From Lytechinus pictus (Eukaryota), in the NCBI RefSeq assembly GCF_037042905.1, contig NC_087257.1:15748001-15812000 (forward strand): a stretch of 64,000 bases of DNA, in the 5' to 3' direction. Positions 6,098-64,000 of this stretch are shown piece after piece. The stretch's first letter is position 1, and each line of letters begins with the position of its first letter. The position numbers were made by a program, and so were the translations under genes. The notes under the pieces were generated by a model. That model searched no databases and had not been told where the DNA came from. It saw only the letters and a list, made by a program, of their open reading frames with translations.

Positions 6098-6156
6098 AGG
6101 AAACCATCAGAGTAGTTGTTTCATATTTAAAATTCATCACAAACCTTTTTGTTAAA

Positions 6157-37885: not shown

Positions 37886-38176
37886 CTGTTACCTATACCA
37901 TGATCAGATGATGATACAAGGGCTGCAACAAGTTTAAAATTAAGTTTTCCATGGTAGTTACCATGACGGCAAGGTTGCAATAATTGAAGAATGATTATGA
38001 AACGGGTCACTTAATTGTCATGCTTCTTTAAAAGAAAGTAGTCGGCACTCCAGTCGACACACTTGTTGAAATCGGCAACCATGGTTATTTTTTTAAACGT
38101 TATCGCTGCCTTTCCTCTTATACCTATTGTCAGTCATGTCAGGAGAGAATATAGTAGCAGGCATGGCAGGGGGAAT

Positions 38177-39350
38177 TGTAAGATTTAGAAAGTGTATTTT
38201 TTCTTTGAAATATTTAACATGACGTCAGAGACGTTAATTGAGTTGTAGCTAGCATCATTTATCTGGGTCGATAGAGGGCGTTGGAAATTTGCCTTGCCAA
38301 GATCAACAAAGATTTAAAGTTCAGCCCGTCGTGACTTTACAGTAGAATTCAAGATAATCGGTTCAAGTCCAATGTTGTAAGTAAAAGGACCTTTATATTT
38401 CCGTAATGTAATGTTTAACTGAATATATGGAACCAAAATTAACTTGAGACGATAATTAATTTGTTGTTAATTTAGCTCATAACTTTGGTGAAAGTGTTTG
38501 GAGTTTACGTATAGAATACACGTGTGATAAACGTATATTGACATTGTACATTGATAGGTAATTGGACATGCACATGAAGAGTGTTGCGTAATAGCATATC
38601 GGTACGGTACTGTGTGGTAATCTCGCACACAGTGCATAGTAGGCTATTCATGTTCAGAGTTGTAAACGAAATGGAATGTCAAATAAACAAATGTTGTTCT
38701 TTGTTAGCTACATTTGGTTCTAGTTGTTGAAAAGGATACAGTATATGTATGAGTTTGGAAATAAGGCATTAAAGCCAGTTTTTGGTGCATTTTAAAGCCC
38801 TGATAATTACAAATAACACATACAGTGAAGGTGAAATAAAAGCCTAGTTATTGGTTTGAGTAAAGTTATTGCTAGTCAATAATGCCTCAGAGTATATAGT
38901 TTAGAGGCAAGGTAATATTTAAGTATCGTAGTTGATATAAAGGACAAATGAGACAAAGTAAAGGTTTTGTTTATTTAACCGCATATAGCAAAGGTTATTC
39001 AAGGTCATTTGAATACATTGACAGAATTTGATAGGTAAATTTGTTACAGGAAACCAGAATATTTATTTAATGCAAGATTCAAACGTCACAAATAATTTGT
39101 GCAATACATAGACTATTTATTTTATCTCATGCAAGTACATAAATGTAACTGCATATACAGATGCTTATTATTGTTTGTTTATATTTTTATGCTACAGATT
39201 GAACATGCTCGATGGTATGCTCGATGGTATGCTCGATGGTATGCCCAGATTGTATACTTGATGCATCGTATGATAACTGGAAATTCCGCGTCACCGAGTC
39301 TTTTGTTTGAGTACTGTCTACTGTCAAGTCACTAGTAGTTATAAGTCACA
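38177..39350 (+). repeat. BEL LTR, subfamily A (5' LTR, 1174 bp)
   Basis: TGTAAGA start matches copies preceded by the PPT; end GTCACA defined by several independent junctions. Confidence 0.88.
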
Positions 39351-39391
39351 TAAAGTTCAATAACATTCGTCACCGTCACAGAACAGTCGCC

Positions 39392-41621
39392 ATGAGTGGA
39401 TCATCTGAAAGTATCAAGTCCGAGGACTCGGCCAGCCAAGGTGGTAAGAGTTCAACAGCGTCATCGAGGATAAAGACGAAGGCCAAGAAGGCAGCCCTGG
39501 CAGCAGAGCTAGCATCCTTGAAGGAACAGCATGAGTTAGAGCTTCAAGAGTTTCAACTACAGCAAAAGAAGGCAAAGTATATGTTAGAAACTAAGCTCAA
39601 AGTTACAGCAGCAGAAGAGGCTGTATATGAACAATTTGATCAGCATCCCAGTCAACTCGACGTTAAGATAGAACCCACAAGTGAAGAACTTGGTCAACAG
39701 CAGCAGCCTGTTCAGCCACAGATTCAGGCCAGCGAGCGTGACAACAATGTACCGCACGAGAATTTGGAAGACACAATGCCATACCCGCAGCACAACCAAG
39801 ATTTGTATCAGTATCAGCAAATACAGCATCGTTTGTTGGAAGCAATAAGCCTGTCAAATGTGGAAATCATGAAGTTTAACGGTAACCCTTTACACTATCA
39901 TGAGTTCATGGCATGTTTTGATAATTTGATAGGCTCGTCTACACTAGACAGAGGGACAAAGCTCATGAAGTTGTATCAGTGCTGTGAAGGGGATGTAAAG
40001 AACATCATACAGTGTTGTATGGTAATGGATCCAGTGCTAGGATATCAACGCGCCAGAGAATTACTGAGAGAACGCTTTGGCAGTAGATTTAAGATAGGAG
40101 AAGCATGGATTGAACAGATAACTAATGGTTCAGCACTTCATGCAAATGATAGAACTGGACTACGCAAGTTTGCTGACGAATTACAGGTATGTCTTGAGAC
40201 TCTTAAGGCATTGAATCTGACAAAGGAAATCAGCAGTAACAGAGAGCTGGTCAAACTGGCAGAAAGACTACCATTTCATCTCAAAGCTAGATGGTTGAAA
40301 GTAGTGAGAGACATTAGGCAAAGAGGTCGATCTCCAGATATCACTGACATGGTGAAGTTTGTATCTGATGCCGCCGAAGAAGTTAACGATCCAGTCTTCG
40401 GTGAGCTGACTGCGACTTCTCCAAGATCAGCATCTAAACCAAGCTTCAACAAGCAACATTCAAAGAGCAGCTACTCTACAGCAGTCACTGATAATTCAAG
40501 CTTTCCTAAGCCCAAGAAGTGCTTCAAGTGTTATCAAGACCATACCTTGTTTGGTTGTGACAGCTTTAAGTCCATGACACCTGATGAGAGATTTAAATTT
40601 GCACAAGAGAACAGACTATGTTTCAATTGCTTGCAACACGGTCACACCAGCAGATTTTGCAAGTTGAACAGAACATGCTCAGTTCCAGGATGTCAGAGAA
40701 AACATACAAAGTTCCTCCACTTATTTCGGGAAAGCTCATCACCTGTAAGAGGTACTCCGCATCAAGAGATAGAGAATAAAGCTCGACCAAATAAACATTT
40801 GAGATCTTCTTCCACTCAAACGCCATTTGATGAAATCCAAACAGCACAGAATAGCTTCATCAAGAAATCGGTCACGGGGGCCGGTAGGTGTGTACTCCCC
40901 ATTGTACCAGTGAGGGTGAGAGCTTGTGGCGAGGGTAATGCTGTTGAAACCTATGCACTCCTGGACAGTGGTTCTACTAGCACCTTTTGTACAGCATCCT
41001 TAGCTAGGCAGCTTCATGCAGTGGAAAGGAAACAAAGTCTCAATCTGACAACACTGGAAAGGTCTAACAACATGGTAGATACATCGGTCGTGAGCCTAAT
41101 AGTAGATACTGGTCCAGATACAGAGATTGTGAAGCTACCATGTGTTTATACTAGAGAGTCCATAAACATTCATGATTCCCATATTGCTAAAGTAGATGAT
41201 GTGACAGGATGGCACCACCTAGATGGAATCAACGTCCCTATCGTCACACAACATGAAGTTGGACTTTTGATCGGGCAAGATGTTCCCGGAGCATTGATTC
41301 CCATGGAGGTTAGAGCAGCCGATGATGGCCCATACGCCATAAGAACCAAATTAGGATGGGCCGTGAGTGGTCCTGTTCAGTCTAAGGTGCTACATAACAT
41401 ACATAAAGCTTCTGCTAGCTTTATTGATAGTAATAGCGAGCTTGAAGATCAACTTCAAAGATTCTGGAAAATTGAAGGCACAATCATTCTTCAGAGGGAC
41501 AAGGATATGTCTTTGAACGACAGAAAGGTGTTGAAATTCTGGGAGAATAGTATTGAAAGAGATAATGGTCATTATCAATTGCCAATACCGTTCAAGGAAA
41601 GGCCACCAAATCTACCAGACA
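39392..41621 (+). CDS. gag-pro: BEL/Pao polyprotein N-part of subfamily A: Gag (DUF1759-like, 3 zinc knuckles) + aspartic protease; truncated by an inversion before RT
   Basis: CFKCYQDHTLFGC, CFNCLQHGHTSRFC, CSVPGCQRKHTKFLH; ALLDSGS; LLIGQD; PYAIRTKLGW. Confidence 0.93.
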
Positions 41622-43717
41622 CAAAGAGTCAATAAACCTTCATCGGTAAGTGTCTGCTGTTTGACCACGGCACTCAAGACCTTCTTTGTCGTTCTAATTT
41701 GTCTTTCCCAAGCTCCACCCATATGAGAAGCAGTGGGTGGGTTAAACTTCCAGTCTATTCCTTCTTGAAGTAGGCGACCCTGGATTCTTTGTTGGTTCCA
41801 CCGCTTCAGTCCTTCTCTCAATTCACGTTCAGCACCCACAAAGTTGGTGCTATTGTCCGACCTGATAATCTCTGGTTGACCACGGCGGGAAATAAATCTG
41901 TTGAGTGCATTCAAAAATGAATCTGTCTCTAATGAATGTAGTACTTCTATGTGAACAGCTCTAATAATCAAACAGGTAAAGATACATCCATATCTTTTTA
42001 CCAAATTTCTTCCTTGCTTTATCATGTATGGTCCAAATACATCGACTCCAACGTAGCTGAAGGGAGGTTTGCTAGGTAACACTCTATCTGATGGCAAATC
42101 AGCCATTTTCTGTTCCACTGGACTGGCACGTAGTCTTCTACATGTAAAGCAGTTGTGTAATACTTGCCGTACTGCTTGCCTTCCCTTGAGTATCCAGTAC
42201 CTTTCCCTCAGCAGCGAAAGCACGTGTTCCTTTCCTGAGTGCCCGGACAAGGAGTGATAATGTTGTATCAAGAGTTTCACAACATGATGCTTTGGTGGCA
42301 GGATAACTGGATGTTTTGTCTGCTCGTCCAGAGGCGAATTTTGAAGCCTTCCTCCAACACATATTAGGCCTCCGTCTGTAAACTGGACATTCAATTTGGA
42401 AAGCGGACTGGAATTGGCTACTTGAATTGCTGCATCTCCCTGCACAGCCGTGCTTTGCTGTAAGGCCTTGTATTCCTTGGAATATGTCTGTTGTTGGATG
42501 TACCTCACAATAGCCTCTTCAGCTTTACTCATATCGCTAGCATCAAGTGAGCTCCTTTCATCACATGTTTGTCCTTTCGTCTTGTTCAACAAGTGTTGTC
42601 TCACTCGAAGGATCCAGGCAACTACTACCTTTAGTTTGTGCCATGACGAGTAGTGTGTTAACAGGCTGTCTACTGTATTGGATTGGTCGGTGTCAGTCGT
42701 AAATACCTGAGTATCCTTCCTCCTTTTCACCTCTGGGTCATTCTCTTCAACAGTCTCAGTTGTAGTAGGATCATCTGGCCATTCATTTTCGTTTTGCTGG
42801 ATGAAATTTGGACCTACAAGCCATCTAGAATTTGCCTTTAGCTCATCAGCCGTCATACTTCTCGTGACATCATCTGCTGGATTACACTGAGTCTTGATGT
42901 AATGCCACTGACTTGGCACTGATTGATCTCGAATAGCTGCTATTCTATTGGCCACGAAGGTATGAAACCTTTTGTCCTCGTTCCTAATATACTGCAAAAC
43001 TATAGTGCTATCGGTCCAGTACACCGATCGCTTGATGGGTATTTCCAATTCCCTTCTCAGAAAGGCATCCAATTTTACTGCAAGAGCGGCCGCCATTAAT
43101 TCAAGTCGAGGGATAGTCATTCTCTTTAGTGGGGCGAGGTGTGATTTGGCAATGATCAACCCACTATAACTCTGGCCAGTTGCATTCTTCAACACTAGGT
43201 AAGATGAAACTCCATATGCCATCTCTGAAGCGTCTGCAAAGTGGTGTACTTCATATTCCTTTACTTCACCAAAATTATGAGGTTTAACGCATCTGTTCAC
43301 TTGAAAATCGGCCATCTTGGGTAGATCAATTAACCATTCATTCCACTTTTCCATTTCGGTCACCGGAATTATCTCATCCCAACCAAGGTTAAGTCTGGTC
43401 AATTCCTGCAGAATTATCTTAGCCCTCAAAGTGAAGGGGATAATGTAGCCAAGAGGGTCGTAGATTGAAGACACTATACTCAATATTCCTCGTCTTGTGG
43501 GTGGTTTGTCTCTGGGTCTGAACTTGTACAGCAAGCAGTCCATCTCCACATCCCAGGTTACTCCAAGTGCTCTTTCGACAGGTAATGCATCTCGATTAAG
43601 ATCTAGACCCTTGATGTTTTTAGCTCTCTCTTCTTCGGGGATTGACTGCAATACAGATGGATTGGAACTGATCCATTTATGTAACCTGAATCCACCATCT
43701 CTGAGTACATTCATCAA
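41611..43717 (-). pseudogene. pol: Inverted pol fragment of A: RT C-terminal tail, RNase H, integrase zinc finger and DDE core
   Basis: GGFRLHKW, YDPLG, FADASEMAYG, PRLELMAA, WTDSTIVL, NPAD, HYHSLSGH..CFTC, GVDVFGP, RSDNSTNF, GGAWERQI. Confidence 0.93.
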
Positions 43718-44267
43718 GGGTCTAGATCTTAATCGAGATGCATTACCTGTCGAAAGAGCACTTGGAGTAACCTGGGATGTGGAGATGGACTGCTTGCTGT
43801 ACAAGTTCAGACCCAGAGACAAACCACCCACAAGACGAGGAATATTGAGTATAGTGTCTTCAATCTACGACCCTCTTGGCTACATTATCCCCTTCACTTT
43901 GAGGGCTAAGATAATTCTGCAGGAATTGACCAGACTTAACCTTGGTTGGGATGAGATAATTCCGGTGACCGAAATGGAAAAGTGGAATGAATGGTTAATT
44001 GATCTACCCAACATGGCCGATTTTCAAGTGAACAGATGCGTTAAACCTCATAATTTTGGTGAAGTAAAGGAATATGAAGTACACCACTTTGCAGACGCTT
44101 CAGAGATGGCATATGGAGTTTCATCTTACCTAGTGTTGAAGAATGCAACTGGCCAGAGTTATAGTGGGTTGATCATTGCCAAATCACACCTCGCCCCACT
44201 AAAGAGAATGACTATCCCTCGACTTGAATTAATGGCGGCCGCTCTTGCAGTAAAATTGGATGCCTTT
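43061..44267. repeat. Fold-back inverted repeat: 556-bp arms (43061-43616 / 43712-44267), 95-nt spacer
   Basis: Arms are reverse complements with one substitution seen (LPK vs LPN); CATCAA at the junction. Confidence 0.93.
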
Positions 44268-44276
44268 GCATCGTTT

Positions 44277-44888
44277 AGTTCAGCCCGTCGTGACTTTACA
44301 GTAGAATTCAAGATAATCGGTTCAAGTCCAATGTTGTAAGTAAAAGGACCTTTATATTTCCGTAATGTAATGTTTAACTGAATATATGGAACCAAAATTA
44401 ACTTGAGACGATAATTAATTTGTTGTTAATTTAGCTCATAACTTTGGTGAAAGTGTTTGGAGTTTACGTATAGAATACACGTGTGATAAACGTATATTGA
44501 CATTGTACATTGATAGGTACTTGGACATGCACATGAAGAGTGTTGCGTAATAGCATATCGGTACGGTACTGTGTGGTAATCTCGCACACAGTGCATAGTA
44601 GGCTATTCATGTTCAGAGTTGTAAACGAAATGGAATGTCAAATAAACAAATGTTGTTCTTTGTTAGCTACATTTGGTTCTAGTTGTTGAAAAGGATACAG
44701 TATATGTATGAGTTTGGAAATAAGGCATTAAAGCCAGTTTTTGGTGCATTTTAAAGCCCTGATAATTACAAATAACACATACAGTGAAGGTGAAATAAAA
44801 GCCTAGTTATTGGTTTGAGTAAAGTTATTGCTAGTCAATAATGCCTCAGAGTATATAGTTTAGAGGCAAGGTAATATTTAAGTATCGT
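44277..44888 (+). repeat. Internal fragment of A-type LTR (starts at LTR nt about 142)
   Basis: Carries A-diagnostic variants GGTTCAAGTCC, AACTTGAGAC. Confidence 0.88.
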
Positions 44889-44933
44889 TTTTAAGTTAAT
44901 TTTGGTTCCATATATTCAGTTAAACATTATTAT

Positions 44934-47900
44934 TGTGACGTATAACTACTAGTGACTTGACAGTAGACAGTACTCAAACAAAAGACTCGGTGACGCGGAA
45001 TTTCCAGTTATCATACGATGCATGAAGTATACAATCTGGGCATACCATCTAGCATACCATCGAGCATACCATCGAGCATACCTTTCAAATTCTGTCAATG
45101 TATTCCAAATGACCTTGAATAAACTTTGCAATATGCGGTAAATAAACAAAACCTTGACTTCGTCTCATTTGTCCTTTATATCCACTACGATACTTAAATA
45201 TTACCTTGCCTCTAAACTATATACTCTGAGGCATTATTGACTAGCAATAACTTTACTCAAACCAATAACTAGGCTTTCATTTCACCTTCACTGTATGTGT
45301 TATTTGTAATTATCAGGGCTTTAAGATGCACCAAAAACTGGCTTTAATGCCTTATTTCCAAACTCATACATATACTGTATCCTTTTCAACAACTAGAACC
45401 AAATGTAGCTAACAAAGAACAACATTTGTTTATTTGACATTCCATTTCGTTTACAACTCTGAACATGAATAGCCTACTATGCACTGTGTGCGAGATTACC
45501 ACACAGTACCGTACCGATATGCTATTACGCAACACTCTTCATGTGCATGTCCAATTACCTATCAATGTACAATGTCAATATACGTTTATCACACGTGTAT
45601 TCTATACGTAAACTCCAAACACTTTCACCAAAGTTATGAGCTAAATTAACAACAAATTAATTATCGTCTCGAGTTAATTTTGGTTCCATATATTCAGTTA
45701 AACATTACATTACGGAAATATAAAGGTCCTTTTACTTACAACATTGGACTTGTACCGATTATCTTGAATTCTACTGTAAAGTCACGACGGGCTGAACTTT
45801 AAATCTTTGTCGATCTTGGCAAGGCAAATTTCCAACGCCCTCTATCGACCCAGATAAATGATGCTACAACTCAATTAACGTCTCTGACGTCATGTTAAAT
45901 ATTTCAAAGAAAAAATACACTTTCTAAATCTTACACTCCGGCCCCTTAAATGCATAGACACAACGGAGCATTTATCAATTTTTTCTTTCACGATTAAAAT
46001 TTACACTGTATCTTGCTTCCCTTTAATCATTTGAACTGACTGGTAAGTAAGAATACACTAAACTCCAAATACCTTTAAATTGCATGTACCTGTATATAAA
46101 TAATAACATGCACTATTTGCTTTAGTACACATAATTGGCTTTGACAACAATTGAAATCGACAACCCTTTCCAATATGGCAGTCTAGAAAATAATTTGATA
46201 TAAACTTTAAATGCTTGTGACCTAGAGACATTCAGTTATGCTCAAGAAAATAATGAATTGCCTTTTTCCTGCAATCATCTATAAAACATTGTCCCTTTAA
46301 AACATAAATTAACATCTATGTCCTATTATTTTTTACAAACATTGTGTTCCCTATTACACAATATCATATCATTTTCTGGGTCTTCACAGATTAAATTCAA
46401 ATTCTAGCTGAGCATACAGTATATACACAAAGTATAAATCTAACGTTATGTATCTTCAATCCTTACAACTCTTTGAATATTTCCAACTATTCTTTTCTTG
46501 CAAAAACACTTGAATTGAGTCGGTGTTTAAACTCAAAAGTGAACCTGTTTTTTGTCTCCTCTTAATCAGCAATGACAATATCAAACTCTCTGCATCAAAT
46601 CTGGCACCTTTGTAAGAATAGTCTTGTTTGAATAACATACTTTATCAACTGTGATCATCAAATATGCCTTTTAGATCACAAAATACACAAAAAATACATC
46701 CTGAGGATGAGATACATTTACTAGATTAACTAGTCTCTTATCAAGTTGAAATATCCCTTTTATATAGTCTTTCTTCAATCCACAATTTAATAAACGTTTT
46801 AATGAATTTCGGAACTTATTATGTCCATCATCTTGAAATTCAAAGTTCTTCATGTTGTCGTCAATTTCAAACTGTTCATGTTGTAACTCATGATTCATTA
46901 TAGTCTTGTTTTAAGTCTTGAATGTTTCTAAACTTTCCATTCTTTAAGAATGATTTGCTGCTTGGCTGAATGTCGTCGTGATAAACTGCTTGAAAATGTC
47001 CTCCACTCTAACAGTCATTCATCTCGAAACAATGAGAATGATTGGTTTCAAATTTTTGAACATTCCTTTGAGCATTTCAAAACAATTCTTGATAACTGAT
47101 GCAAATTCCTTTTCCTTGATTAGCAATTCCTGCTTTTGCTGTGCTATCAAATTATCAATTTTCAATCGACCTGGTACCACACTAATCGTCTTGTATTGTT
47201 CTATAAGAGCAAATTCAATATAAAGAAAATTTTACTCACTAATTTTAAACTTTCTGCTATTTCCAAAAATACGATTTCTGAACTGGTCCTTTTTGGATCT
47301 CACCTGCTACATTTTTACACTTTCACCACAATGAGAAATATATCTTTGTAGTGCCTTAAATTCAAATATTTTCTCTAACAAAATACATATGTATCAGATA
47401 ATTTTTATGACCAAACATGTACGTGTACAGATTCAACCGTATCCCTTTTCTGAATTTCTTTGTTTTACAATGTACGGTGTGAAACTGTCAACTCCAAAAT
47501 ACATGTAGCCAAATAAAGGTTTACCAGGTGACACTCTGGGCAGATTGGCCAGGTCCGGCCCCTGTGGAACCTTGTCAGGTAATGCTTCTTCATTATGCTT
47601 TGCCACACAATCACTAATAACTTGTGGACTTATGATTAAATGGTGAGGTAAGTACAATGAGGTTATATCTTCTAATTGTTCTGTCTTATTAACTTTCATT
47701 ATAGAGTAGTTACTTAGCATATGTTCTACGTCCACTTGGTGTTTCTTCTGAAGTGTATCATCTATCAGTAATCTCTTGGGTGACGACTGCAAACGCTGTT
47801 CTGCAGTCAAAATGTCGTCTGGTAGTTTTGGCGTTTTCTTCTCAAACGACGTTGGCGATAGGTTGTGAACTCCATCCTTTTTACCACTACTCTCCCGGAA

Positions 47901-50900: not shown

Positions 50901-51127
50901 ATCAATGTACAATGTCAATATACGTTTATCACACGTGTATTCTATACGTAAACTCCAAACACTTTCACCAAAGTTATGAGCTAAATTAACAACAAATTAA
51001 TTATCGTCTCGAGTTAATTTTGGTTCCATATATTCAGTTAAACATTACATTACGGAAATATAAAGGTCCTTTTACTTACAACATTGGACTTGTACCGATT
51101 ATCTTGAATTCTACTGTAAAGTCACGA
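44934..51127 (-). mobile_element. Non-autonomous BEL element B, nearly complete (5' LTR 50107-51127 lacking its first about 150 nt; 3' LTR 44934-45935 with about 162-bp deletion; PPT 45936-45947)
   Basis: LTR-ORF-3'UTR-PPT(AAGGGGCCGGAG)-LTR on the minus strand. Confidence 0.92.
47433..50048 (-). CDS. gag-pro: 871-aa Gag-protease ORF of element B with decayed RT/integrase tail
   Basis: Zinc knuckles, ALLDTGS; tail LYLPHH..QGPDLANLP fused to RVSPGKPLFGY..GVDSFTPY. Confidence 0.92.
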   Translation of the reverse strand: MSGSSESIKSEDSASQGGKSSTASSRIKTKAKKAALAAELASLKEQHELELQEFHLQQKKAQFMLETKLKVAAAEEAVYEQFDQHPSQLDIKIEPTSEELGQQQQPIQPQIQASEHRNNVRQENLEDTMPYPQHNQDLYQYQQIQDRLLEAISLSNVEIMKFNGNPLHYHEFMACFDNLIGSSTLDRGTKLMKLYQCCEGDVKNIIQCCMVMDPVLGYQRARELLRERFGSRFKIGEAWIEQITNGSALHANDRTGLRKFADELQVCLETLKALNLTKEISSNRELVKLAERLPFHLKARWLKVVRDIRQRGRSPDITDMVKFVSDAAEEVNDPVFGELTATSPRSASKPSFNKQHSKSSYSTAVTDNSSFPKPKKCFKCYQDHTLFGCDSFKSLTPDERFKFAQENRLCFNCLQQGHTSRICKLNRTCSVPGCQRKHTKFLHLFRESLSPERGTPHQEIENQPQPNKHLISSSTQTPFDEIQTAQNSFIDKSVTGAGRCVLPIVPVRVRAHNESQSVETYALLDTGSTSTFCTAALSRQLNAVERKQSLNLSTLGRSNSTVDTSVVSLIVDTGKDTEIVKLPRVYTRESINVKESHIAKMEDIRGWNHLEGINIPIVTQHEVGLLIGQDVPGALIPIEIRASEDGPYAVRTKLGWAVSGPVQPKMPEDIHTATTSFVGSDIKLEDGRLQIFRKNESSEVLQKDKVSSINVSNASAFRESSGKKDGVHNLSPTSFEKKTPKLPDDILTAEQRLQSSPKRLLIDDTLQKKHQVDVEHMLSNYSIMKVNKTEQLEDITSLYLPHHLIISPQVISDCVAKHNEEALPDKVPQGPDLANLPRVSPGKPLFGYMYFGVDSFTPYIVKQRNSEKGYG

Positions 51128-51749
51128 GTAGTTATACGTCACTTCATGCATCGTATGATAACTGGAAATTCCGCGTCACCGAGTCTTTTGTTTGAGTACT
51201 GTCTACTGTCAAGTCACTAGTAGTTATACGTCACAAAAAGCTTACTTTGTGTATATACTGTATGCTCAGCTAGAATTTGAATTTAATCTGTGAAGACCCA
51301 GAAAATAATTTGATATAAACTTTAAATGCTTGTGACCTAGAGACATTCAGTTATGCTCAAGAAAATAATGAATTGCCTTTTTCCTGCAATCATCTATAAA
51401 ACATTGTCCCTTTAAAACATAAATTAACATCTATGTCCTATTATTTTTTACAAACATTGTGTTCCCTATTACACAATATCATATCATTTTCTGGGTCTTC
51501 ACAGATTAAATTCAAATTCTAGCTGAGCACACTAATCGTCTTGTATTGTTCTATAAGAGCAAATTCAATATAAAGAAAAAATACACTTTCTAAATCTTAC
51601 ACTCCGGCCCCTTAAATGCATAGACACAACGGAGCATTTATCAATTTTTTCTTTCACGATTAAAAGAAAAAATTGATAAATGCTCCGTTGTGTCTATGCA
51701 TTTAAGGGGCCGGAGTGTAAGATCAAGGTTATCAAGATCTTGCCTTTTT
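51127..51749. other. Patchwork junction of at least 7 short element-derived fragments in both orientations
   Basis: LTR end, 3'UTR and PPT pieces joined at AGAAAAT, AAAGAAAA and similar; includes a 61-bp-arm hairpin 51594-51723. Confidence 0.85.
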
Positions 51750-54700: not shown

Positions 54701-55801
54701 TGTTCTACGTCCACTTGGTGTTTCTTCTGAAGTGTATCATCTATCAGTAATCTCTTGGGTGACGACTGCAAACGCTGTTCTGCAGTCAAAATGTCGTCTG
54801 GTAGTTTTGGCGTTTTCTTCTCAAACGACGTTGGCGATAGGTTGTGAACTCCATCCTTTTTACCACTACTCTCCCGGAAAGCTGACGCATTACTAACATT
54901 GATGGACGAAACCTTGTCCTTCTGAAGAACTTCTGAGCTTTCATTCTTCCTGAATATCTGAAGTCTGCCATCCTCCAGTTTGATGTCGCTACCAACAAAG
55001 CTTGTAGTAGCTGTGTGTATGTCTTCTGGCATCTTGGGCTGGACAGGACCACTTACTGCCCATCCTAATTTGGTTCTTACAGCATAAGGTCCATCCTCGG
55101 ATGCTCTAATTTCTATAGGTATCAATGCTCCAGGCACATCTTGTCCGATCAAAAGTCCAACTTCATGTTGTGTGACGATAGGAATGTTGATTCCTTCTAG
55201 GTGGTTCCATCCTCTGATGTCTTCCATCTTGGCGATGTGAGATTCTTTGACGTTGATTGACTCTCTTGTATATACACGTGGTAACTTCACTATCTCTGTA
55301 TCTTTGCCTGTGTCTACTATGAGGCTAACAACTGATGTATCTACTGTGCTGTTAGATCTTCCAAGTGTTGATAGATTTAGACTTTGCTTCCTTTCCACTG
55401 CATTAAGTTGTCTGGATAGGGCTGCTGTACAAAACGTGCTGGTAGAACCAGTATCTAGGAGTGCGTAAGTTTCAACAGACTGGCTCTCGTTGTGTGCCCT
55501 TACCCTAACTGGAACGATGGGAAGTACACACCTACCGGCCCCTGTGACCGACTTATCAATGAAGCTATTCTGAGCTGTTTGGATTTCATCAAATGGCGTT
55601 TGAGTGGAAGATGATATCAAATGTTTATTTGGTTGAGGCTGATTCTCTATCTCTTGATGCGGAGTACCTCTTTCAGGTGACAAGCTTTCCCGAAATAAGT
55701 GGAGAAACTTTGTATGTTTTCTCTGACATCCTGGTACTGAGCATGTTCGGTTCAACTTACAAATTCTGCTGGTATGACCTTGTTGCAAGCAATTGAAACA
55801 T
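51750..55801 (-). mobile_element. 5'-truncated element B (complete 3' LTR 51750-52914; ORF remnant 54412-55801 from zinc knuckle 2 onward)
   Basis: Direct repeat of 44934-48822 (internal offset 6979). Confidence 0.92.
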
Positions 55802-56275
55802 TTATTGACTCTTATGTGTCTGGTAGAGTCAATTGTAAATGGACGTCCAGTAACCACTGTCTCCGACGATGCCCGAGATGCTGAGCCCCTTACACCCAAC
55901 CATTTGTTGCTCCTGAGGTCAAATAATCCCCTTCCGCCTGATGTATTTCAGAAGCAGGACTTGTATGGACGTCGGCGCTGGAAACAAATCCAATACTTAG
56001 CAGATGTTTTCTGGCGGCGGTGGGTAAAGGAGTATTTGCCTACCCTACAGCAACGTCAAAAGTGGCAAAAACCAACAAGAAATCTGGTTGAAGGTGATAT
56101 TGTATTGATAATGGATGATCAACCTAGGAACAAGTGGCTAATGGGAAGGGTGACAGAGACCTTCCCTGGTAAGGACAAGCTCGTCAGATCTGTAAAGGTA
56201 AAGCACAGCAGTGGGACCCTAGAACGACCTGTTCAAAAATTATGCCTTTTGGAGGCAACCGGATTAAATGTTTAA
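55802..56275 (+). pseudogene. pol: Integrase C-terminal fragment of A (DUF5641-like)
   Basis: LLTLMCLVESIVNGRP..PLTPNHLLL..FWRRWVKEYL..GDIVL..LVRSVKV..RPVQKLCLLE*. Confidence 0.92.
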
Positions 56276-57713
56276 GCGAGAGAGTTAAAATCGCAGTGTC
56301 TAAACTCCCATTTCCCTGGTCTAAGTGCATTTAACAAGCAATTTGTGCGGAATATGGATTTGATAAAAGGATAAGGAGTAAATTCATATCTGAGATTTAT
56401 TTGTCAAATCTGTTTAAAATTTTCTTTATATTGAACTTGCTCTTATAGAACAATACAAGAAGATTAGTGTGGTACCAGGTCAATTGAAATTGATAATTTG
56501 ATAGCACAGCAAAAGCAGGAACTGCTAATCAAGGAAAAGGAATTTGCATCAGTTATCAAGAATTGTTTTTGAAATGCTCAAAGGAATGTTCAAAATTTTG
56601 AAACCAATCATTCTCATTGTTTCGAGATGAATGACTGTTAGAGTGGAGGACATTTTCAAGCAGTTTATCACGACGACATTCAGCCAAGCAGCAAATCATT
56701 CTTAAAGAATGGAAAGTTTAGAAACATTCAAGACTTGAAACAAGACTATAATGAATCATGAGTTACAACATGAACAGTTTGAAATTGACGACAACATGAA
56801 GAACTTTGAATTTCAAGATGATGGACATAATAAGTTCCGAAATTCATTAAAACGTTTATTAAATTGTGGATTGAAGAAAGACTATATAAAAGGGATATTT
56901 CAACTTGATAAGAGACTAGTTAATCTAGTAAATGTATCTCATCCTCAGGATGTATTTTTTGTGTATTTTGTGATCTAAAAGGCATATTTGATGATCACAG
57001 TTGATAAAGTATGTTATTCAAACAAGACTATTCTTACAAAGGTGCCAGATTTGATGCAGAGAGTTTGATATTGTCATTGCTGATTAAGAGGAGACAAAAA
57101 ACAGGTTCACTTTTGAGTTTAAACACCGACTCAATTCAAGTGTTTTTGCAAGAAAAGAATAGTTGGAAATATTCAAAGAGTTGTAAGGATTGAAGATACA
57201 TAACGTTAGATTTATACTTTGTGTATATACTGTATGCTCAGCTAGAATTTGAATTTAATCTGTGAAGACCCAGAAAATGATATGATATTGTGTAATAGGG
57301 AACACAATGTTTGTAAAAAATAATAGGACATAGATGTTAATTTATGTTTTAAAGGGACAATGTTTTATAGATGATTGCAGGAAAAAGGCAATTCATTATT
57401 TTCTTGAGCATAACTGAATGTCTCTAGGTCACAAGCATTTAAAGTTTATATCAAATTATTTTCTAGACTGCCATATTGGAAAGGGTTGTCGATTTCAATT
57501 GTTGTCAAAGCCAATTATGTGTACTAAAGCAAATAGTGCATGTTATTATTTATATACAGGTACATGCAATTTAAAGGTATTTGGAGTTTAGTGTATTCTT
57601 ACTTACCAGTCAGTTCAAATGATTAAAGGGAAGCAAGATACAGTGTAAATTTTAATCGTGAAAGAAAAAATTGATAAATGCTCCGCTGTGTCTATGCATT
57701 TAAGGGGCCGGAG

Positions 57714-58877
57714 TGTAAGATTTAGAAAGTGTATTTTTTCTTTGAAATATTTAACATGACGTCAGAGACGTTAATTGAGTTGTAGCATCATTTATCTGGG
57801 TCGATAGAGGGCGTTGGAAATTTGCCTTGCCAAGATTGACAAAGATTTAAAGTTCAGCCCGTCGTGACTTTACAGTAGAATTCAAGATAATCGGTACAAG
57901 TCCAATGTTGTAAGTAAAAGGACCTTTATATTTCCGTAATGTAATGTTTAACTGAATATATGGAACCAAAATTAACTCGAGACGATAATTAATTTGTTGT
58001 TAATTTAGCTCATAACTTTGGTGAAAGTGTTTGGAGTTTACGTATAGAATACACGTGTGATAAACGTATATTGACATTGTACATTGATAGGTAATTGGAC
58101 ATGCACATGAAGAGTGTTGCGTAATAGCATATCGGTACGGTACTGTGTGGTAATCTCGCACACAGTGCATAGTAGGCTATTCATGTTCAGAGTTGTAAAC
58201 GAAATGGAATGTCAAATAAACAAATGTTGTTCTTTGTTAGCTACATTTGGTTCTAGTTGTTGAAAAGGATACAGTATATGTATGAGTTTGGAAATAAGGC
58301 ATTAAAGCCAGTTTTTGGTGCATCTTAAAGCCCTGATAATTACAAATAACACATACAGTGAAGGTGAAATGAAAGCCTAGTTATTGGTTTGAGTAAAGTT
58401 ATTGCTAGTCAATAATGCCTCAGAGTATATAGTTTAGAGGCAAGGTAATATTTAAGTATCGTAGTGGATATAAAGGACAAATGAGACGAAGTCAAGGTTT
58501 TGTTTATTTACCGCATATTGCAAAGTTTATTCAAGGTCATTTGGAATACATTGACAGAATTTGATAGGTATGTTACAGGAAACCAGAATATTATTTATGC
58601 AAGATTCAAACGTCACAAATAATTTGTGCAATACATAGACTATTTATTTTATCTCATGCAAGTACATAAATGTAACTGCATATACAGATGCTTATTATTG
58701 TTTGTTTATATTTTTATGCTACAGATTGAACATGCTCGATGGTATGCTCGATGGTATGCTAGATGGTATGCCCAGATTGTATACTTCATGCATCGTATGA
58801 TAACTGGAAATTCCGCGTCACCGAGTCTTTTGTTTGAGTACTGTCTACTGTCAAGTCACTAGTAGTTATACGTCACA
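57714..58877 (+). repeat. BEL 3' LTR preceded by PPT (57702-57713)
   Basis: AAGGGGCCGGAG|TGTAAGA ... GTCACA; B-type variants. Confidence 0.9.
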
Positions 58878-58909
58878 AAAAAAAAAACATTTTTTAAAAA
58901 TTTGTTTAG

Positions 58910-60073
58910 TGTAAGATTTAGAAAGTGTATTTTTTCTTTGAAATATTTAACATGACGTCAGAGACGTTAATTGAGTTGTAGCATCATTTATCTGGGTCGA
59001 TAGAGGGCGTTGGAAATTTGCCTTGCCAAGATCGACAAAGATTTAAAGTTCAGCCCGTCGTGACTTTACAGTAGAATTCAAGATAATCGGTACAAGTCCA
59101 ATGTTGTAAGTAAAAGGACCTTTATATTTCCGTAATGTAATGTTTAACTGAATATATGGAACCAAAATTAACTCGAGACGATAATTAATTTGTTGTTAAT
59201 TTAGCTCATAACTTTGGTGAAAGTGTTTGGAGTTTACGTATAGAATACACGTGTGATAAACGTATATTGACATTGTACATTGATAGGTAATTGGACATGC
59301 ACATGAAGAGTGTTGCGTAATAGCATATCGGTACGGTACTGTGTGGTAATCTCGCACACAGTGCATAGTAGGCTATTCATGTTCAGAGTTGTAAACGAAA
59401 TGGAATGTCAAATAAACAAATGTTGTTCTTTGTTAGCTACATTTGGTTCTAGTTGTTGAAAAGGATACAGTATATGTATGAGTTTGGAAATAAGGCATTA
59501 AAGCCAGTTTTTGGTGCATCTTAAAGCCCTGATAATTACAAATAACACATACAGTGAAGGTGAAATGAAAGCCTAGTTATTGGTTTGAGTAAAGTTATTG
59601 CTAGTCAATAATGCCTCAGAGTATATAGTTTAGAGGCAAGGTAATATTTAAGTATCGTAGTGGATATAAAGGACAAATGAGACGAAGTCAAGGTTTTGTT
59701 TATTTACCGCATATTGCAAAGTTTATTCAAGGTCATTTGGAATACATTGACAGAATTTGATAGGTATGTTACAGGAAACCAGAATATTATTTATGCAAGA
59801 TTCAAACGTCACAAATAATTTGTGCAATACATAGACTATTTATTTTATCTCATGCAAGTACATAAATGTAACTGCATATACAGATGCTTATTATTGTTTG
59901 TTTATATTTTTATGCTACAGATTGAACATGCTCGATGGTATGCTCGATGGTATGCTAGATGGTATGCCCAGATTGTATACTTCATGCATCGTATGATAAC
60001 TGGAAATTCCGCGTCACCGAGTCTTTTGTTTGAGTACTGTCTACTGTCAAGTCACTAGTAGTTATACGTCACA
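58910..60073 (+). repeat. BEL 5' LTR of the next element B copy
   Basis: Complete TG..CA copy 32 nt after the preceding LTR. Confidence 0.9.
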
Positions 60074-60131
60074 AAAAGTTCAATAACAATCGTCACCGTA
60101 AGAACAGTCGTCACCGTCAAGAACAGTCGCC

Positions 60132-62747
60132 ATGAGTGGATCATCTGAAAGTATCAAGTCCGAGGACTCGGCCAGCCAAGGTGGTAAGAGTTCAACAGCG
60201 TCATCGAGGATAAAGACGAAGGCCAAGAAGGCAGCCCTGGCAGCAGAGCTAGCATCCTTGAAGGAACAGCATGAGTTAGAGCTTCAAGAATTTCATCTAC
60301 AGCAAAAGAAGGCACAGTTTATGTTAGAAACTAAGCTCAAAGTTGCAGCAGCAGAAGAGGCTGTATATGAACAATTTGATCAGCATCCCAGTCAACTCGA
60401 CATTAAGATAGAACCCACAAGTGAAGAACTTGGTCAACAGCAGCAGCCCATTCAGCCACAGATTCAGGCCAGCGAGCATCGCAACAATGTACGTCAGGAG
60501 AATTTGGAAGACACAATGCCATACCCGCAGCACAACCAAGATTTGTATCAGTATCAGCAAATACAGCATCGTTTGTTGGAAGCAATAAGCCTGTCAAATG
60601 TGGAAATCATGAAGTTTAACGGTAACCCTTTACACTATCATGAGTTCATGGCATGTTTTGATAATTTGATAGGCTCGTCTACACTAGACAGAGGGACAAA
60701 GCTCATGAAGTTGTATCAGTGCTGTGAAGGGGATGTAAAGAACATCATACAGTGTTGTATGGTAATGGATCCAGTGCTAGGATATCAACGCGCCAGAGAA
60801 TTACTGAGAGAACGCTTTGGCAGTAGATTTAAGATAGGAGAAGCATGGATTGAACAGATAACTAATGGTTCAGCACTTCATGCAAATGATAGAACTGGAC
60901 TACGCAAGTTTGCTGACGAATTACAGGTATGTCTTGAGACTCTTAAGGCATTGAATCTGACAAAGGAAATCAGCAGTAACAGAGAGCTGGTCAAACTGGC
61001 AGAAAGACTACCATTTCATCTCAAAGCTAGATGGTTGAAAGTAGTGAGAGACATTAGGCAAAGAGGTCGATCTCCAGATATCACTGACATGGTGAAGTTT
61101 GTATCTGATGCCGCCGAAGAAGTTAACGATCCAGTCTTCGGTGAGCTGACTGCGACTTCTCCAAGATCAGCATCTAAACCAAGCTTCAACAAGCAACATT
61201 CAAAGAGCAGCTACTCTACAGCAGTCACTGATAATTCAAGCTTTCCTAAGCCCAAGAAGTGCTTCAAGTGTTATCAAGACCATACCTTGTTTGGTTGTGA
61301 CAGCTTTAAGTCTCTGACACCTGATGAGAGATTTAAATTTGCACAAGAGAACAGACTATGTTTCAATTGCTTGCAACAAGGTCATACCAGCAGAATTTGT
61401 AAGTTGAACCGAACATGCTCAGTACCAGGATGTCAGAGAAAACATACAAAGTTTCTCCACTTATTTCGGGAAAGCTTGTCACCTGAAAGAGGTACTCCGC
61501 ATCAAGAGATAGAGAATCAGCCTCAACCAAATAAACATTTGATATCATCTTCCACTCAAACGCCATTTGATGAAATCCAAACAGCTCAGAATAGCTTCAT
61601 TGATAAGTCGGTCACAGGGGCCGGTAGGTGTGTACTTCCCATCGTTCCAGTTAGGGTAAGGGCACACAACGAGAGCCAGTCTGTTGAAACTTACGCACTC
61701 CTAGATACTGGTTCTACCAGCACGTTTTGTACAGCAGCCCTATCCAGACAACTTAATGCAGTGGAAAGGAAGCAAAGTCTAAATCTATCAACACTTGGAA
61801 GATCTAACAGCACAGTAGATACATCAGTTGTTAGCCTCATAGTAGACACAGGCAAAGATACAGAGATAGTGAAGTTACCACGTGTATATACAAGAGAGTC
61901 AATCAACGTCAAAGAATCTCACATCGCCAAGATGGAAGACATAAGAGGATGGAACCACCTAGAAGGAATCAACATTCCTATCGTCACACAACATGAAGTT
62001 GGACTTTTGATCGGACAAGATGTGCCTGGAGCATTGATACCTATAGAAATTAGAGCATCCGAGGATGGACCTTATGCTGTAAGAACCAAATTAGGATGGG
62101 CAGTAAGTGGTCCTGTCCAGCCCAAGATGCCAGAAGACATACACACAGCTACTACAAGCTTTGTTGGTAGCGACATCAAACTGGAGGATGGCAGACTTCA
62201 GATATTCAGGAAGAATGAAAGCTCAGAAGTTCTTCAGAAGGACAAGGTTTCGTCCATCAATGTTAGTAATGCGTCAGCTTTCCGGGAGAGTAGTGGTAAA
62301 AAGGATGGAGTTCACAACCTATCGCCAACGTCGTTTGAGAAGAAAACGCCAAAACTACCAGACGACATTTTGACTGCAGAACAGCGTTTGCAGTCGTCAC
62401 CCAAGAGATTACTGATAGATGATACACTTCAGAAGAAACACCAAGTGGACGTAGAACATATGCTAAGTAACTACTCTATAATGAAAGTTAATAAGACAGA
62501 ACAATTAGAAGATATAACCTCATTGTACTTACCTCACCATTTAATCATAAGTCCACAAGTTATTAGTGATTGTGTGGCAAAGCATAATGAAGAAGCATTA
62601 CCTGACAAGGTTCCACAGGGGCCGGACCTGGCCAATCTGCCCAGAGTGTCACCTGGTAAACCTTTATTTGGCTACATGTATTTTGGAGTTGACAGTTTCA
62701 CACCGTACATTGTAAAACAAAGAAATTCAGAAAAGGGATACGGTTGA
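60132..62747 (+). CDS. gag-pro: 871-aa Gag-protease ORF of element B (second intact copy)
   Basis: Identical to 47433-50048 product except one residue seen (IQHRL vs IQDRL). Confidence 0.92.
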   Translation: MSGSSESIKSEDSASQGGKSSTASSRIKTKAKKAALAAELASLKEQHELELQEFHLQQKKAQFMLETKLKVAAAEEAVYEQFDQHPSQLDIKIEPTSEELGQQQQPIQPQIQASEHRNNVRQENLEDTMPYPQHNQDLYQYQQIQHRLLEAISLSNVEIMKFNGNPLHYHEFMACFDNLIGSSTLDRGTKLMKLYQCCEGDVKNIIQCCMVMDPVLGYQRARELLRERFGSRFKIGEAWIEQITNGSALHANDRTGLRKFADELQVCLETLKALNLTKEISSNRELVKLAERLPFHLKARWLKVVRDIRQRGRSPDITDMVKFVSDAAEEVNDPVFGELTATSPRSASKPSFNKQHSKSSYSTAVTDNSSFPKPKKCFKCYQDHTLFGCDSFKSLTPDERFKFAQENRLCFNCLQQGHTSRICKLNRTCSVPGCQRKHTKFLHLFRESLSPERGTPHQEIENQPQPNKHLISSSTQTPFDEIQTAQNSFIDKSVTGAGRCVLPIVPVRVRAHNESQSVETYALLDTGSTSTFCTAALSRQLNAVERKQSLNLSTLGRSNSTVDTSVVSLIVDTGKDTEIVKLPRVYTRESINVKESHIAKMEDIRGWNHLEGINIPIVTQHEVGLLIGQDVPGALIPIEIRASEDGPYAVRTKLGWAVSGPVQPKMPEDIHTATTSFVGSDIKLEDGRLQIFRKNESSEVLQKDKVSSINVSNASAFRESSGKKDGVHNLSPTSFEKKTPKLPDDILTAEQRLQSSPKRLLIDDTLQKKHQVDVEHMLSNYSIMKVNKTEQLEDITSLYLPHHLIISPQVISDCVAKHNEEALPDKVPQGPDLANLPRVSPGKPLFGYMYFGVDSFTPYIVKQRNSEKGYG

Positions 62748-63117
62748 ATCTGTACACGTACATGTTTGGTCATAAAAATTATCTGATACATATGTATTTT
62801 GTTAGAGAAAATATTTGAATTTAAGGCACTACAAAGATATATTTCTCATTGTGGTGAAAGTGTAAAAATGTAGCAGGTGAGATCCAAAAAGGACCAGTTC
62901 AGAAATCGTATTTTTGGAAATAGCAGAAAGTTTAAAATTAGTGAGTAAAATTTTCTTTATATTGAATTTGCTCTTATAGAACAATACAAGACGATTAGTG
63001 TGGTACCAGGTCGATTGAAAATTGATAATTTGATAGCACAGCAAAAGCAGGAATTGCTAATCAAGGAAAAGGAATTTGCATCAGTTATCAAGAATTGTTT
63101 TGAAATGCTCAAAGGAA

Positions 63118-64000
63118 TGTTCAAAAATTTGAAACCAATCATTCTCATTGTTTCGAGATGAATGACTGTTAGAGTGGAGGACATTTTCAAGCAGTTTATC
63201 ACGACGACATTCAGCCAAGCAGCAAATCATTCTTAAAGAATGGAAAGTTTAGAAACATTCAAGACTTAAAACAAGACTATAATGAATCATGAGTTACAAC
63301 ATGAACAGTTTGAAATTGACGACAACATGAAGAACTTTGAATTTCAAGATGATGGACATAATAAGTTCCGAAATTCATTAAAACGTTTATTAAATTGTGG
63401 ATTGAAGAAAGACTATATAAAAGGGATATTTCAACTTGATAAGAGACTAGTTAATCTAGTAAATGTATCTCATCCTCAGGATGTATTTTTTGTGTATTTT
63501 GTGATCTAAAAGGCATATTTGATGATCACAGTTGATAAAGTATGTTATTCAAACAAGACTATTCTTACAAAGGTGCCAGATTTGATGCAGAGAGTTTGAT
63601 ATTGTCATTGCTGATTAAGAGGAGACAAAAAATACATCCTGAGGATGAGATACATTTACTAGATTAACTAGTCTCTTATCAAGTTGAAATATCCCTTTTA
63701 TATAGTCTTTCTTCAATCCACAATTTAATAAACGTTTTAATGAATTTCGGAACTTATTATGTCCATCATCTTGAAATTCAAAGTTCTTCATGTTGTCGTC
63801 AATTTCAAACTGTTCATGTTGTAACTCATGATTCATTATAGTCTTGTTTTAAGTCTTGAATGTTTCTAAACTTTCCATTCTTTAAGAATGATTTGCTGCT
63901 TGGCTGAATGTCGTCGTGATAAACTGCTTGAAAATGTCCTCCACTCTAACAGTCATTCATCTCGAAACAATGAGAATGATTGGTTTCAAATTTTTGAACA
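63118..64000. repeat. Fold-back inverted repeat in the B 3'UTR (left arm ends 63493, right arm starts 63625, 131-nt spacer, runs off window)
   Basis: 8-bp microhomology ACAAAAAA at 63625-63632. Confidence 0.9.

Follow-up and report, generated by a model that had tools for sequence, protein, structure and literature searches.

We found that a 34,801-bp block of BEL/Pao retrotransposon DNA in Lytechinus pictus consists of shuffled pieces in both orientations, enclosed by a single target-site duplication, and that many of its joints lie at landmarks of reverse transcription. The block begins within the window (the whole stretch of 64,000 nucleotides that we analysed) and runs past its end, and we number positions beyond the end as L001 (L001 8977 is 72977 in the extended numbering, ext). 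Our best explanation, to which we give roughly even chances, is that this is a real germline locus in which a pol-bearing element, which we call A, integrated once and had its reverse transcriptase (RT) and RNase H region replaced by aberrant cDNAs. We infer an extrachromosomal cDNA origin for the pieces, and also that A was a single element.

The left border is an exact LTR start (GGAAT, then TGTAAG, at 38176/38177). The right border had been predicted to be an LTR terminus followed by GGAAT, and this is what we found: the LTR ends at L001 8977 and the next five bases are GGAAT. So one integration scar encloses the whole block. (An identical 5-mer on both sides is expected by chance in 1 of 1,024 cases.) The outer LTRs are of the same type, with 1 mismatch in 1,170 bases. 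The one duplication spans more than one unit length, with authentic LTR termini at the outer ends; the preliminary description gave a size of at least 25.8 kb, which is what the window showed, but the full block is 34.8 kb, or three to five unit lengths. At the edges, 3.4 kb on the left and 4.1 kb on the right (6.6 kb if the piece preceding the tRNA is included) are A sequence, collinear and in one orientation, running from the 5' LTR to the protease on the left and from the integrase to the 3' LTR on the right. The scrambled interior has about 26 joints and about 25 shuffled pieces. None of the flanking host DNA is found inside the block, as had been claimed, but the block is not entirely free of host sequence: 75 nt of it (tRNA-Asp plus CCA) derive from the host. 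The right flank is unique in the assembly, as is the left flank except for a common ~180-bp repeat, and searching the assembly contigs with both flanks gave no empty site or second haplotype.

Table 1. Features of the block. Positions are in the window unless preceded by L001; R denotes reference coordinates.
Feature	Position	Strand	Details
Whole block	38177 to L001 8977		34,801 bp; ends 8,977 bases beyond the window end
Target-site duplication GGAAT, left copy	38172..38176	unstranded	right copy at L001 8978-8982, past the window
A-type 5' LTR (TGTAAG...GTCACA)	38177..39350	+	partner at L001 7808-8977
A leader and gag-protease frame, broken off at joint	39351..41621	+	ORF 39392-41635, with DUF1759 and aspartyl protease; at such identity, found only in the block (assembly search)
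11-nt microhomology joint TCTACCAGACA	41611..41621		sense protease end to antisense integrase end
A pol: RT end, Peptidase_A17 region, integrase zinc finger and core	41622..43711	-	RT front absent
Fold-back arm	43712..44267	+	reverse complement of 43061-43616; 95-nt loop; CATCAA microhomology; stops at the pol breakpoint that recurs
A-type LTR fragment, LTR positions 137-749	44277..44888	+	preceded by 9-nt filler; 0/612 mismatches to right outer LTR
Inverted 37-nt A-type LTR piece, positions 269 to 233	44893..44929	-	
B copy 1, exact 3' LTR end to 5' LTR position 148	44934..51127	-	deletions: ~175 bp in LTR at 45079, the family's 5380/8414, ~134 bp private to block; gag-protease ORF intact (871 aa, 47433-50048)
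Patchwork of eight short pieces (33-233 nt)	51128..51749	both	622 nt; includes the LTR's final ~95 nt plus AAAAG (51141-51240) and polypurine-tract pieces; 22 nt (51724-51745) matched to no piece
B copy 2, exact 3' LTR end (AAAAA adjoining) to gag position 2458	51750..55801	-	2 differences from B copy 1 in 3,875 nt
3' half, homologous recombinant of A, third-type, and B sequence	55802..58877	+	A-type, with the A-specific integrase tail (DUF5641), up to about R 4500; shares three variant sites with third type; B-type from R 4806 to exact LTR end
A/T-rich filler, LTR end to LTR start, head-to-tail	58878..58909		32 nt; first 4 nt are the post-LTR spacer, last 2 nt the polypurine-tract end
B copy 3, exact 5' LTR start to R 4862	58910..63632	+	ORF intact (871 aa, 60132-62747)
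B fold-back, R 4725 to 4253	63625..64000, on to L001 98	-	8-nt overlap ACAAAAAA
Minus-strand DNA start	L001 116-140		
Third type	L001 157-1197 and 1191-1580		
A fold-back	L001 1592-2413 / 2410-4821		
tRNA-Asp plus CCA	L001 4822-4896		
A integrase to 3' LTR	L001 4913-8977		

A window-wide comparison confirmed that the block is made of high-identity pieces in alternating orientation: 38177-64000 is filled with kilobase-scale direct and inverted repeats that are 99.5-100% identical, and the rest of the window has none. For instance, 46548-50393 and 59787-63632 form an inverted repeat of 3,846 nt, and 45077-48822 and 52055-55801 form a direct repeat of 3,747 nt; both are far beyond chance. Two subfamilies had been described, but there are three sequence types: A, B, and a third variant. 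The earlier labels of helper and parasite suit A and B well, as A is the only type with pol and carries Peptidase_A17, integrase, and DUF5641, while B is pol-less and has gag-protease alone. The A-type 5' LTR differs from the block's B-type LTRs at 14-17 positions. The two A copies of the block differ only next to the primer-binding site. Copies within the block differ at about 1 site per 1-2 kb, which exceeds what is expected from one round of reverse transcription of one master and counts against our best reading. In the 812-Mb assembly, neither the A pol nor the block's type of B occurs outside the block; the family's only pol sequence is the broken one in the block, and no unrearranged A was found.

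The family has the domains of BEL/Pao elements: a gag-like DUF1759, a Pao-type Peptidase_A17 region, an integrase (H2C2 and rve), and a DUF5641 tail. The nearest relatives of the block's pol are echinoderm BEL/Pao pol proteins, at 51-56% identity. When we searched other assemblies at the protein level for an intact A pol, nothing exceeded 56% identity except the window's own gene model. A domain search detected no reverse transcriptase in the block, whose copy is broken there, but the BEL/Pao assignment stands. LTRs of the form TG...CA with a 5-bp target-site duplication are found for the block and for all eight of the dispersed copies (three full copies and five solo LTRs), whose duplications are clean. 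None of the six dispersed LTR-bounded or solo copies that we inspected one by one encodes its own enzymes. (Two truncated relatives on C21, at ~90% identity, were aligned to the pol-less reference only and lie outside this enzyme check. We considered these two loci as further composites, but they are truncated copies beside satellite and have no bearing on the block.)

The joints at LTR termini that the preliminary description listed (44934, 51750, and 58877/58910) are all correct. Of its microhomologies, we found TCTACCAGAC(A) at 41611-41621, CATCAA at 43712-43717, and ACAAAAAA at 63625-63632, but AGAAAAT was not located. The first is 11 nt long when judged against the unrearranged sequence in another sample. 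A pol breakpoint, ...GGATGCCTTT, which is 2 nt before a purine tract, recurs in both A copies, and the breakpoint at the protease end was used twice, 8 nt apart. At four places (51235, 51750, 58877, and L001 120), a piece ends with the LTR end plus the 4-nt spacer, which is where minus-strand DNA starts, and at 58910 a joint lies at the exact LTR start. Head-to-tail joints of LTR, filler, and LTR occur twice in the block. In two-LTR circles, the LTR end is joined to the LTR start with a few bases gained or lost. The joints at 58877/58910 and 51750...51127 are similar, but unlike those of such circles or other extrachromosomal circular DNA, they are chromosomal and lie in stretches that exceed one unit. 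Because many joints are at landmarks of reverse transcription, the block may record how the copying of retrotransposon cDNA goes wrong. Many other joints, such as 55801 and 66410, lack any landmark and are equally compatible with template switching at the DNA level.

Two sequences in the block are otherwise expected only in processed RNAs: the CCA of the tRNA and a spliced ATTGAAC after LTR position 197. At L001 1191-1209, the first 197 nt of the LTR are followed by ATTGAAC, by TTTG, and lastly by the LTR end in inverted orientation. The LTR contains an intron (GTAAGT...ACAG), immediately after which come the 7 nt ATTGAAC, and the splice is visible in RNA reads of sample X27 and in one contig of sample X14. 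Because the spliced joint is complementary to the primer-binding site and the splice is seen in RNA, L001 1191-1209 reads as a copied primer-to-cDNA junction. This supports the idea that the family may prime from a spliced piece of its own LTR. Tf1 is self-primed: its primer-binding site pairs with the element's own RNA, not with a tRNA. In the block's family too, the primer-binding site would pair with the element's own RNA, and cDNA ends appear to carry primer remnants, but the putative primer, the complement of that site, would arise by splicing of the LTR intron. Single-stranded primer remnants at Tf1 cDNA ends take part in unusual joining (PMC11042837). The tRNA-Asp in the block is identical to the genomic genes at 72/72 positions, and the CCA is absent from the four genomic genes. 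After the tRNA come a 17-nt snap-back copy and then a 13-nt patch of pol. We also considered that tRNA-Asp might be the regular primer, but its 3' end finds no complement in the sequence that follows the LTR, which instead matches the spliced LTR junction. The LTR end plus 4 nt, the spliced primer joint, and the CCA-tailed tRNA support the earlier proposal that the pieces originated as cDNA.

Nested clusters of LTR elements are like the block in that several copies lie within one another at one locus. A nested copy, however, is a complete unit flanked by a duplication of its own. In the block, every inner copy has one end missing, and, as claimed earlier, there are no internal duplications (none of the 5-mers flanking 44934, 51235, 51750, 58877, 58910, and L001 120 match in any pairing), although each of the eight dispersed copies of the family is flanked by one. 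We therefore reject simple nesting. We also rejected insertion by integrase of two fold-back units (44934...51235 and 51750...58877), which lack duplications and have unprocessed ends. Alternatively, B and the third type might have inserted into a resident A and then been scrambled at the DNA level without cDNA, either by template switching of the kind seen in chromoanasynthesis or by inversions and duplications involving pairs of inverted copies. Such scrambling typically leaves microhomologies, short-loop fold-backs, and segments present in two or three copies, and duplication in place predicts that the three B copies would be nearly identical and private to the block, as they are. However, this would require at least two insertions into one ~10-kb element when the genome has only three other full copies, with none of the internal duplications surviving. 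The block contains more DNA of the family than all the dispersed copies combined, which is not expected from random nested insertion. Also, 55802-58877 was not copied from the right A end, and this account would leave unexplained why four breakpoints lie at the LTR end plus 4 nt and why the spliced primer junction and the CCA-tailed tRNA lie at joints. We consider this explanation very unlikely.

Chromoanasynthesis, or microhomology-mediated break-induced replication (PMC13065848), resembles the block in its serial template switches, short templated inserts, inverted duplications, and microhomology. In the block, however, a mature tRNA and the junction of a spliced RNA are among the templates; neither has a chromosomal template, and the block's type of B has no copy outside. 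The tRNA and the spliced junction point to a reverse transcriptase rather than a replicative polymerase. We propose that a pol-bearing A was inserted once by integrase, which would account for the matched A-type LTR termini and the one GGAAT duplication. The part of A between the protease end and the integrase would have been replaced, with RT and RNase H partly lost and partly kept in inverted form, by about 27 kb of aberrant reverse-transcription products from A, the pol-less B, and the third variant. These products may have been joined by template switches at microhomologies of 3-18 nt, by fold-backs, by read-through into primers and tRNA, and by end joining of unprocessed cDNA ends with short fillers. 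The filling may have preceded integration, with the A cDNA as its site, or have followed it, at a break in the A already inserted.

Another explanation is that linear cDNAs of A, B, and the third type, each formed separately, were first strung together extrachromosomally and that integrase then inserted the resulting 34.8-kb concatemer as one unit via two free A-type ends. This would also give one GGAAT duplication around the entire block, and unprocessed cDNA ends joined with fillers are what is found at two-LTR junctions. Furthermore, the contributors (A, B, the third type, and tRNA) are the only RNAs that would be expected in a particle of this family, and Ty1 cDNA multimers in yeast are a precedent (PMC7524711). 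But if the joining was random, it would be only by chance that the two free ends are both of A type, share a strand, and lead into collinear A; A-type termini are absent from the interior; and one integrase complex would have to hold both ends of 35 kb. We think that a concatemer is unlikely. The preliminary description had the block inserted as a single unit that was assembled beforehand. The one scar agrees with a single insertion, but the collinear A edges on the same strand fit an A that was patched in the middle at least as well as preassembly. Its second option, one insertion that underwent a chromoanasynthesis-like event with cDNA templates, suits the edges at least as well, as it too leaves a single A patched in the middle.

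We compared 41101-47100 with contigs or reads from samples X14, X10, X26, and X27, which are other animals and may be RNA. The X14 contigs pass 41621 and 43717 into unrearranged A, and at 41624 the X14 and X10 contigs continue into the native integrase end. An X14 contig also continues into RT sequence that has no counterpart in the assembly (two RT 30-mers from this continuation are absent). The RNA reads of X26 and X27 cover only the LTR exons. No X14 or X10 contig bridges the joints at 41621, 43664 (the hairpin), 44934, or 45079, and none of the five joints that we examined is bridged by contigs of other samples. As these are other animals and possibly RNA, the contigs show only that unrearranged A exists elsewhere, and they neither confirm nor refute the block. 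Since they read through two breakpoints and bridge none of the five joints, the block is private, polymorphic, or, less likely, an artefact.

If it were an artefact, chimeric reads (such as fold-back chimeras) would have been built into the contig. The unbridged joints would then be explained, and fold-back joints at microhomologies are the usual form of amplification chimeras. But both edges of the scramble coincide exactly with LTR termini flanked by a matching duplication, the scramble includes no flanking host DNA, and it uses element types that are missing from the rest of the assembly. The joints at biological landmarks also argue against an artefact, overlap assemblers join reads across kilobases and not across 6-18 nt, and we saw no such fold-backs in the other 29 kb of flanks that we examined. 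An artefact therefore seems quite improbable to us.

Our literature searches found no natural example of such a block in an animal, though this does not prove that none exists. In yeast, multimeric Ty1 arrays were reportedly described by Bryk et al. in 2001. Like the block, Ty1 multimers place more than one unit length of LTR-retrotransposon cDNA at one site, via cDNA recombination, but the Ty1 arrays are regular, head-to-tail, and of one element, while the block has three types, both orientations, about 26 irregular joints, and a tRNA. Ty1 cDNA is also captured at double-strand breaks (Moore and Haber 1996; Teng et al. 1996; Yu and Gabriel; summarised in PMC1976456), and the captured pieces there range from 140 bp to 5.6 kb, with one or two per event. 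These events share with our proposed locus the use of extrachromosomal cDNA as filler, the microhomology at joints, and sometimes more than one fragment. The block, by contrast, is set in an animal germ line and within a copy of its own family, and comprises about 27 kb made up of about 20 pieces. That the yeast events are far simpler is another point against our best reading.

Aberrant reverse-transcription products of LTR retrotransposons are usually studied in yeast or cell culture and are then lost. Here, primer read-through, strong-stop ends, template switches between helper and parasite, capture of a tRNA, and end-joined cDNA were apparently fixed in a chromosome. If the joints hold in raw reads, the block would provide base-level evidence of how aberrant cDNAs form in an animal germ line, and it would be indirect evidence that helper and parasite RNAs meet one reverse transcriptase. 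It is doubtful that the entire 35-kb composite arose from a helper RNA, two parasite RNAs, and a packaged tRNA in one runaway round of reverse transcription and end joining, followed by a single integration. If it did, then BEL/Pao helper and parasite RNAs share particles, and the integrase can insert DNA that is several unit lengths long.

In maize, Mu killer is a precedent for silencing by hairpin RNA. Similarly, the kilobase-scale perfect inverted repeats of gag-protease would, if the joints hold, make the block a candidate source of hairpin RNA that silences the family.

We added 20 kb of downstream DNA to the window (L001, whose first position adjoins 64000, and L002) and aligned all of it to R, a dispersed copy on C2 of the 812 Mb source assembly, read in sense. 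In that assembly, the window spans C13:15,748,001–15,812,000. The scrambled block begins at 38177 and ends at L001 8977, for a length of 34,801 bp. In a self-comparison of the window, 38177–64000 is packed with kilobase-scale repeats of 99.5–100% identity in both orientations, which bears out the preliminary description's very similar copies in alternating orientation. The left edge is GGAAT/TGTAAG. The right edge is GTCACA/GGAAT, which is the LTR terminus followed by GGAAT that had been predicted. The outer LTRs have one mismatch between them across 1,170 positions, and they differ at 14–17 positions from the five internal LTRs of type B (see below). Copies inside the block differ at about one site per 1–2 kb. 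Given how similar the outer LTRs and the inner copies are, the insertion and the scrambling are, at this resolution, both recent and near each other in time.

These repeats belong to a BEL/Pao LTR retrotransposon, whose reading frames match DUF1759 (gag), an aspartyl protease, Peptidase_A17, the integrase zinc finger and core, and DUF5641. Two subfamilies had been described in the block, but we can tell apart three sequence types: A, which bears pol; B; and a third.

Sequence types in the block and dispersed copies of the family. Bare coordinates are window positions.
Feature	Location	Length	Remarks
Type A	outer LTRs; 38177-41621; L001 1592-4821
Type A pol pieces	41505-44276; 55802-56274; L001 4713-6371
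Intron in A 5' LTR	38374-39198	about 825 nt	GTAAGT...TGCTACAG
Type B copy, pol-less	44934-51127		antisense
Type B copy, pol-less	51750-55801		antisense
Type B copy, pol-less	58910-63632		sense
Third type	L001 157-1580		matches neither A nor B
Dispersed copy R	C2	9,695 bp	single 883-codon gag-protease frame
Dispersed copies	C6 and C19	6.6-6.7 kb	LTRs 100% identical
Solo LTRs			n=5

A whole-assembly search found no A pol pieces outside the block, and A gag at 100% identity is also confined to it within the assembly. The three B copies share a deletion of ~134 bp and differ from each other at 1–8 sites. No LTR of their type is seen outside the block; among the dispersed copies the closest, on C19, differs at 6–7 LTR sites and at 105 sites overall. 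The segment 55802–58877 is A-type to about R 4500; from R 4806 onward, its LTR included, it is B-type, and it has three sites in common with the third type. This mosaic carries none of the variants peculiar to the right A end, so it is a homologous recombinant rather than a duplicate made locally.

The block might be an artefact, but we consider this improbable: the limits of the scramble coincide exactly with two LTR termini and their matching duplication, the scramble has no flanking DNA, it is built from sequence types that are missing elsewhere in the assembly, and its breaks fall on biological landmarks. We also compared contigs and reads from other individuals (possibly from RNA) across 41101–47100. 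In sample X14, a 798-nt contig continues beyond 41621 with the gag-protease frame still open, and another, of 2,572 nt, extends from the native integrase end past 43717 into more pol. X10 has the same read-through at 41624. No contig from these other animals, whose runs may be RNA, bridges 41621, the hairpin at 43664, 44934, or 45079. Two 30-mers that continue the X14 contigs are not in the reference assembly, so other animals carry unrearranged A and the assembly has broken A only.

About 26 joints are specific to the block, 18 of which fall within the window, and there are about a dozen switches of orientation. Overlaps at the joints are 3–18 nt and fillers are 4–32 nt; neither local alignment nor whole-genome searches, run with longer sequence than the fillers alone, gave a source for the fillers. 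In all pairings within the block, no internal LTR termini are flanked by matching 5-mers, which confirms the reported lack of internal target duplications.

The outer ends of the block are A-type, co-oriented, and collinear, and no A termini lie inside. We therefore favor, at about an even chance, that a single A element would have been broken in the middle and the gap taken up by aberrant cDNAs. This would be a form of cDNA capture at breaks (PMC1976456) or, alternatively, of cDNA multimer formation (PMC7524711). The preliminary description had offered either one insertion patched with cDNA, which fits the ends, or a concatemer of joined cDNAs that integrated as one unit. The latter, if the joining was random, seems unlikely: it does not explain why both free ends are A-type, share an orientation, and run into collinear A, or why A termini are lacking inside.

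Several joints have features of reverse transcription. In this family, a spacer (AAAA, TAAA, or CAAA) separates the LTR end from GTTCAATAAC. Precisely at this spacer, or one base beyond it, fall four of the joints (51235–51240, 51746–51750, 58877–58881, and L001 116–140). Furthermore, every full LTR of the block contains a consensus intron (CAATGTT/GTAAGT ... TGCTACAG/ATTGAAC), and the spliced sequence CAATGTTATTGAAC, with the junction CAATGTT/ATTGAAC, is the reverse complement of the primer-binding site, 4 nt past the LTR end. Among the other samples, three X27 RNA-seq reads and one X14 contig (depth 48) carry this splice. The intron and the complementarity are compatible with splice-dependent self-priming. 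At L001 1191–1209, LTR 1–197 is followed by ATTGAAC, TTTG, and an inverted LTR end, which is how a DNA copy of the spliced-RNA primer, joined to the first minus-strand bases, would look. This cannot have come from chromosomal DNA, because there GTAAGT follows LTR position 197.

Within 41101–47100, total-RNA reads from two 2026 runs fall on the two LTR exons only (45067–45740); A pol and the interior of B receive none. Expression of the family in these samples is weak, or chiefly in the form of spliced LTR transcripts.

In the right A copy, an antisense tRNA-Asp(GTC) (L001 4822–4896) takes the place of the RT and RNase H region. Its 72 nt are identical to genomic genes and are followed by CCA, where four genomic tRNA-Asp genes have other bases and a T run. 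Then come a 17-nt opposite-strand copy (snap-back), 13 nt of pol, and integrase. Two breakpoints are common to both A copies: one at the protease end (41613–41621; L001 4821), and one following ...GGATGCCTTT (44267; L001 4912). The latter stops 2 nt short of the purine run GAGAAGGGAA, a run that is possibly an internal plus-strand priming site. At the head-to-tail LTR joint 58877/58910, the 32 intervening nt begin with the 4-nt spacer and finish with 2 nt from the end of the polypurine tract. A second such joint is a 622-nt patchwork (51128–51749) that separates two antisense B copies. Both resemble end-joined ends of linear cDNA.

Could nested copies have been scrambled by DNA-only events instead? 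These would account for the microhomologies and for a B type confined to the block, but they leave unexplained the RNA-only sequences at joints and the four breaks at the minus-strand start. One 10-kb target would also have to be hit twice, in a genome that holds three full copies besides it. We think such a history has little probability.

More than 50 tRNA-Asp(GTC) genes, identical to the block's tRNA, lie in tandem at about 152-bp spacing on the same chromosome, 5.3 Mb downstream (G000:C13:21,151,700-21,173,100). A second tRNA-Asp, antisense and nearly full-length, lies in unrelated surroundings (L017, G000:C12:24173150-24173270). It follows TGG (that is, CCA), which suggests another reverse-transcribed tRNA-Asp.

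Clean 5-bp target duplications flank all eight dispersed copies (C2, C6, C19, and the five solo LTRs), and none of these eight references contains pol. We compared natural copies only and built no consensus element. In whole-assembly searches, the block's 34.8 kb of family DNA exceeds the ~29 kb in all dispersed copies combined. The family was mobile recently, as the C6 and C19 copies carry identical LTRs, and it must have been mobilised by pol in trans. Pol is missing from each of the three full-length dispersed copies with at least 96% identity (C2, C6, and C19). The C2 copy, the longest of the dispersed ones, has an extra 3 kb relative to the 6.6-kb copies (R 5380–8414, L005 and L006), with no open frame of at least 120 codons.

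Two older copies (~90–95% identity) lie 14 Mb apart on C21 (L018 3923–9995 and L019 4–6846). Both are truncated at LTR position ~978, share an insertion of ~1.9 kb at R 1525, and adjoin one and the same satellite. A segmental duplication is their most likely origin.

Immediately left of the block is a SINE- or MITE-like interspersed repeat of ~180 bp (37705–37890), with over 2,000 candidate copies genome-wide at 88–93% identity. Satellite-like tandem and inverted arrays also lie in the host DNA to the left (24738–25649, 27504–28190, 30010–30193, and 32373–32627).
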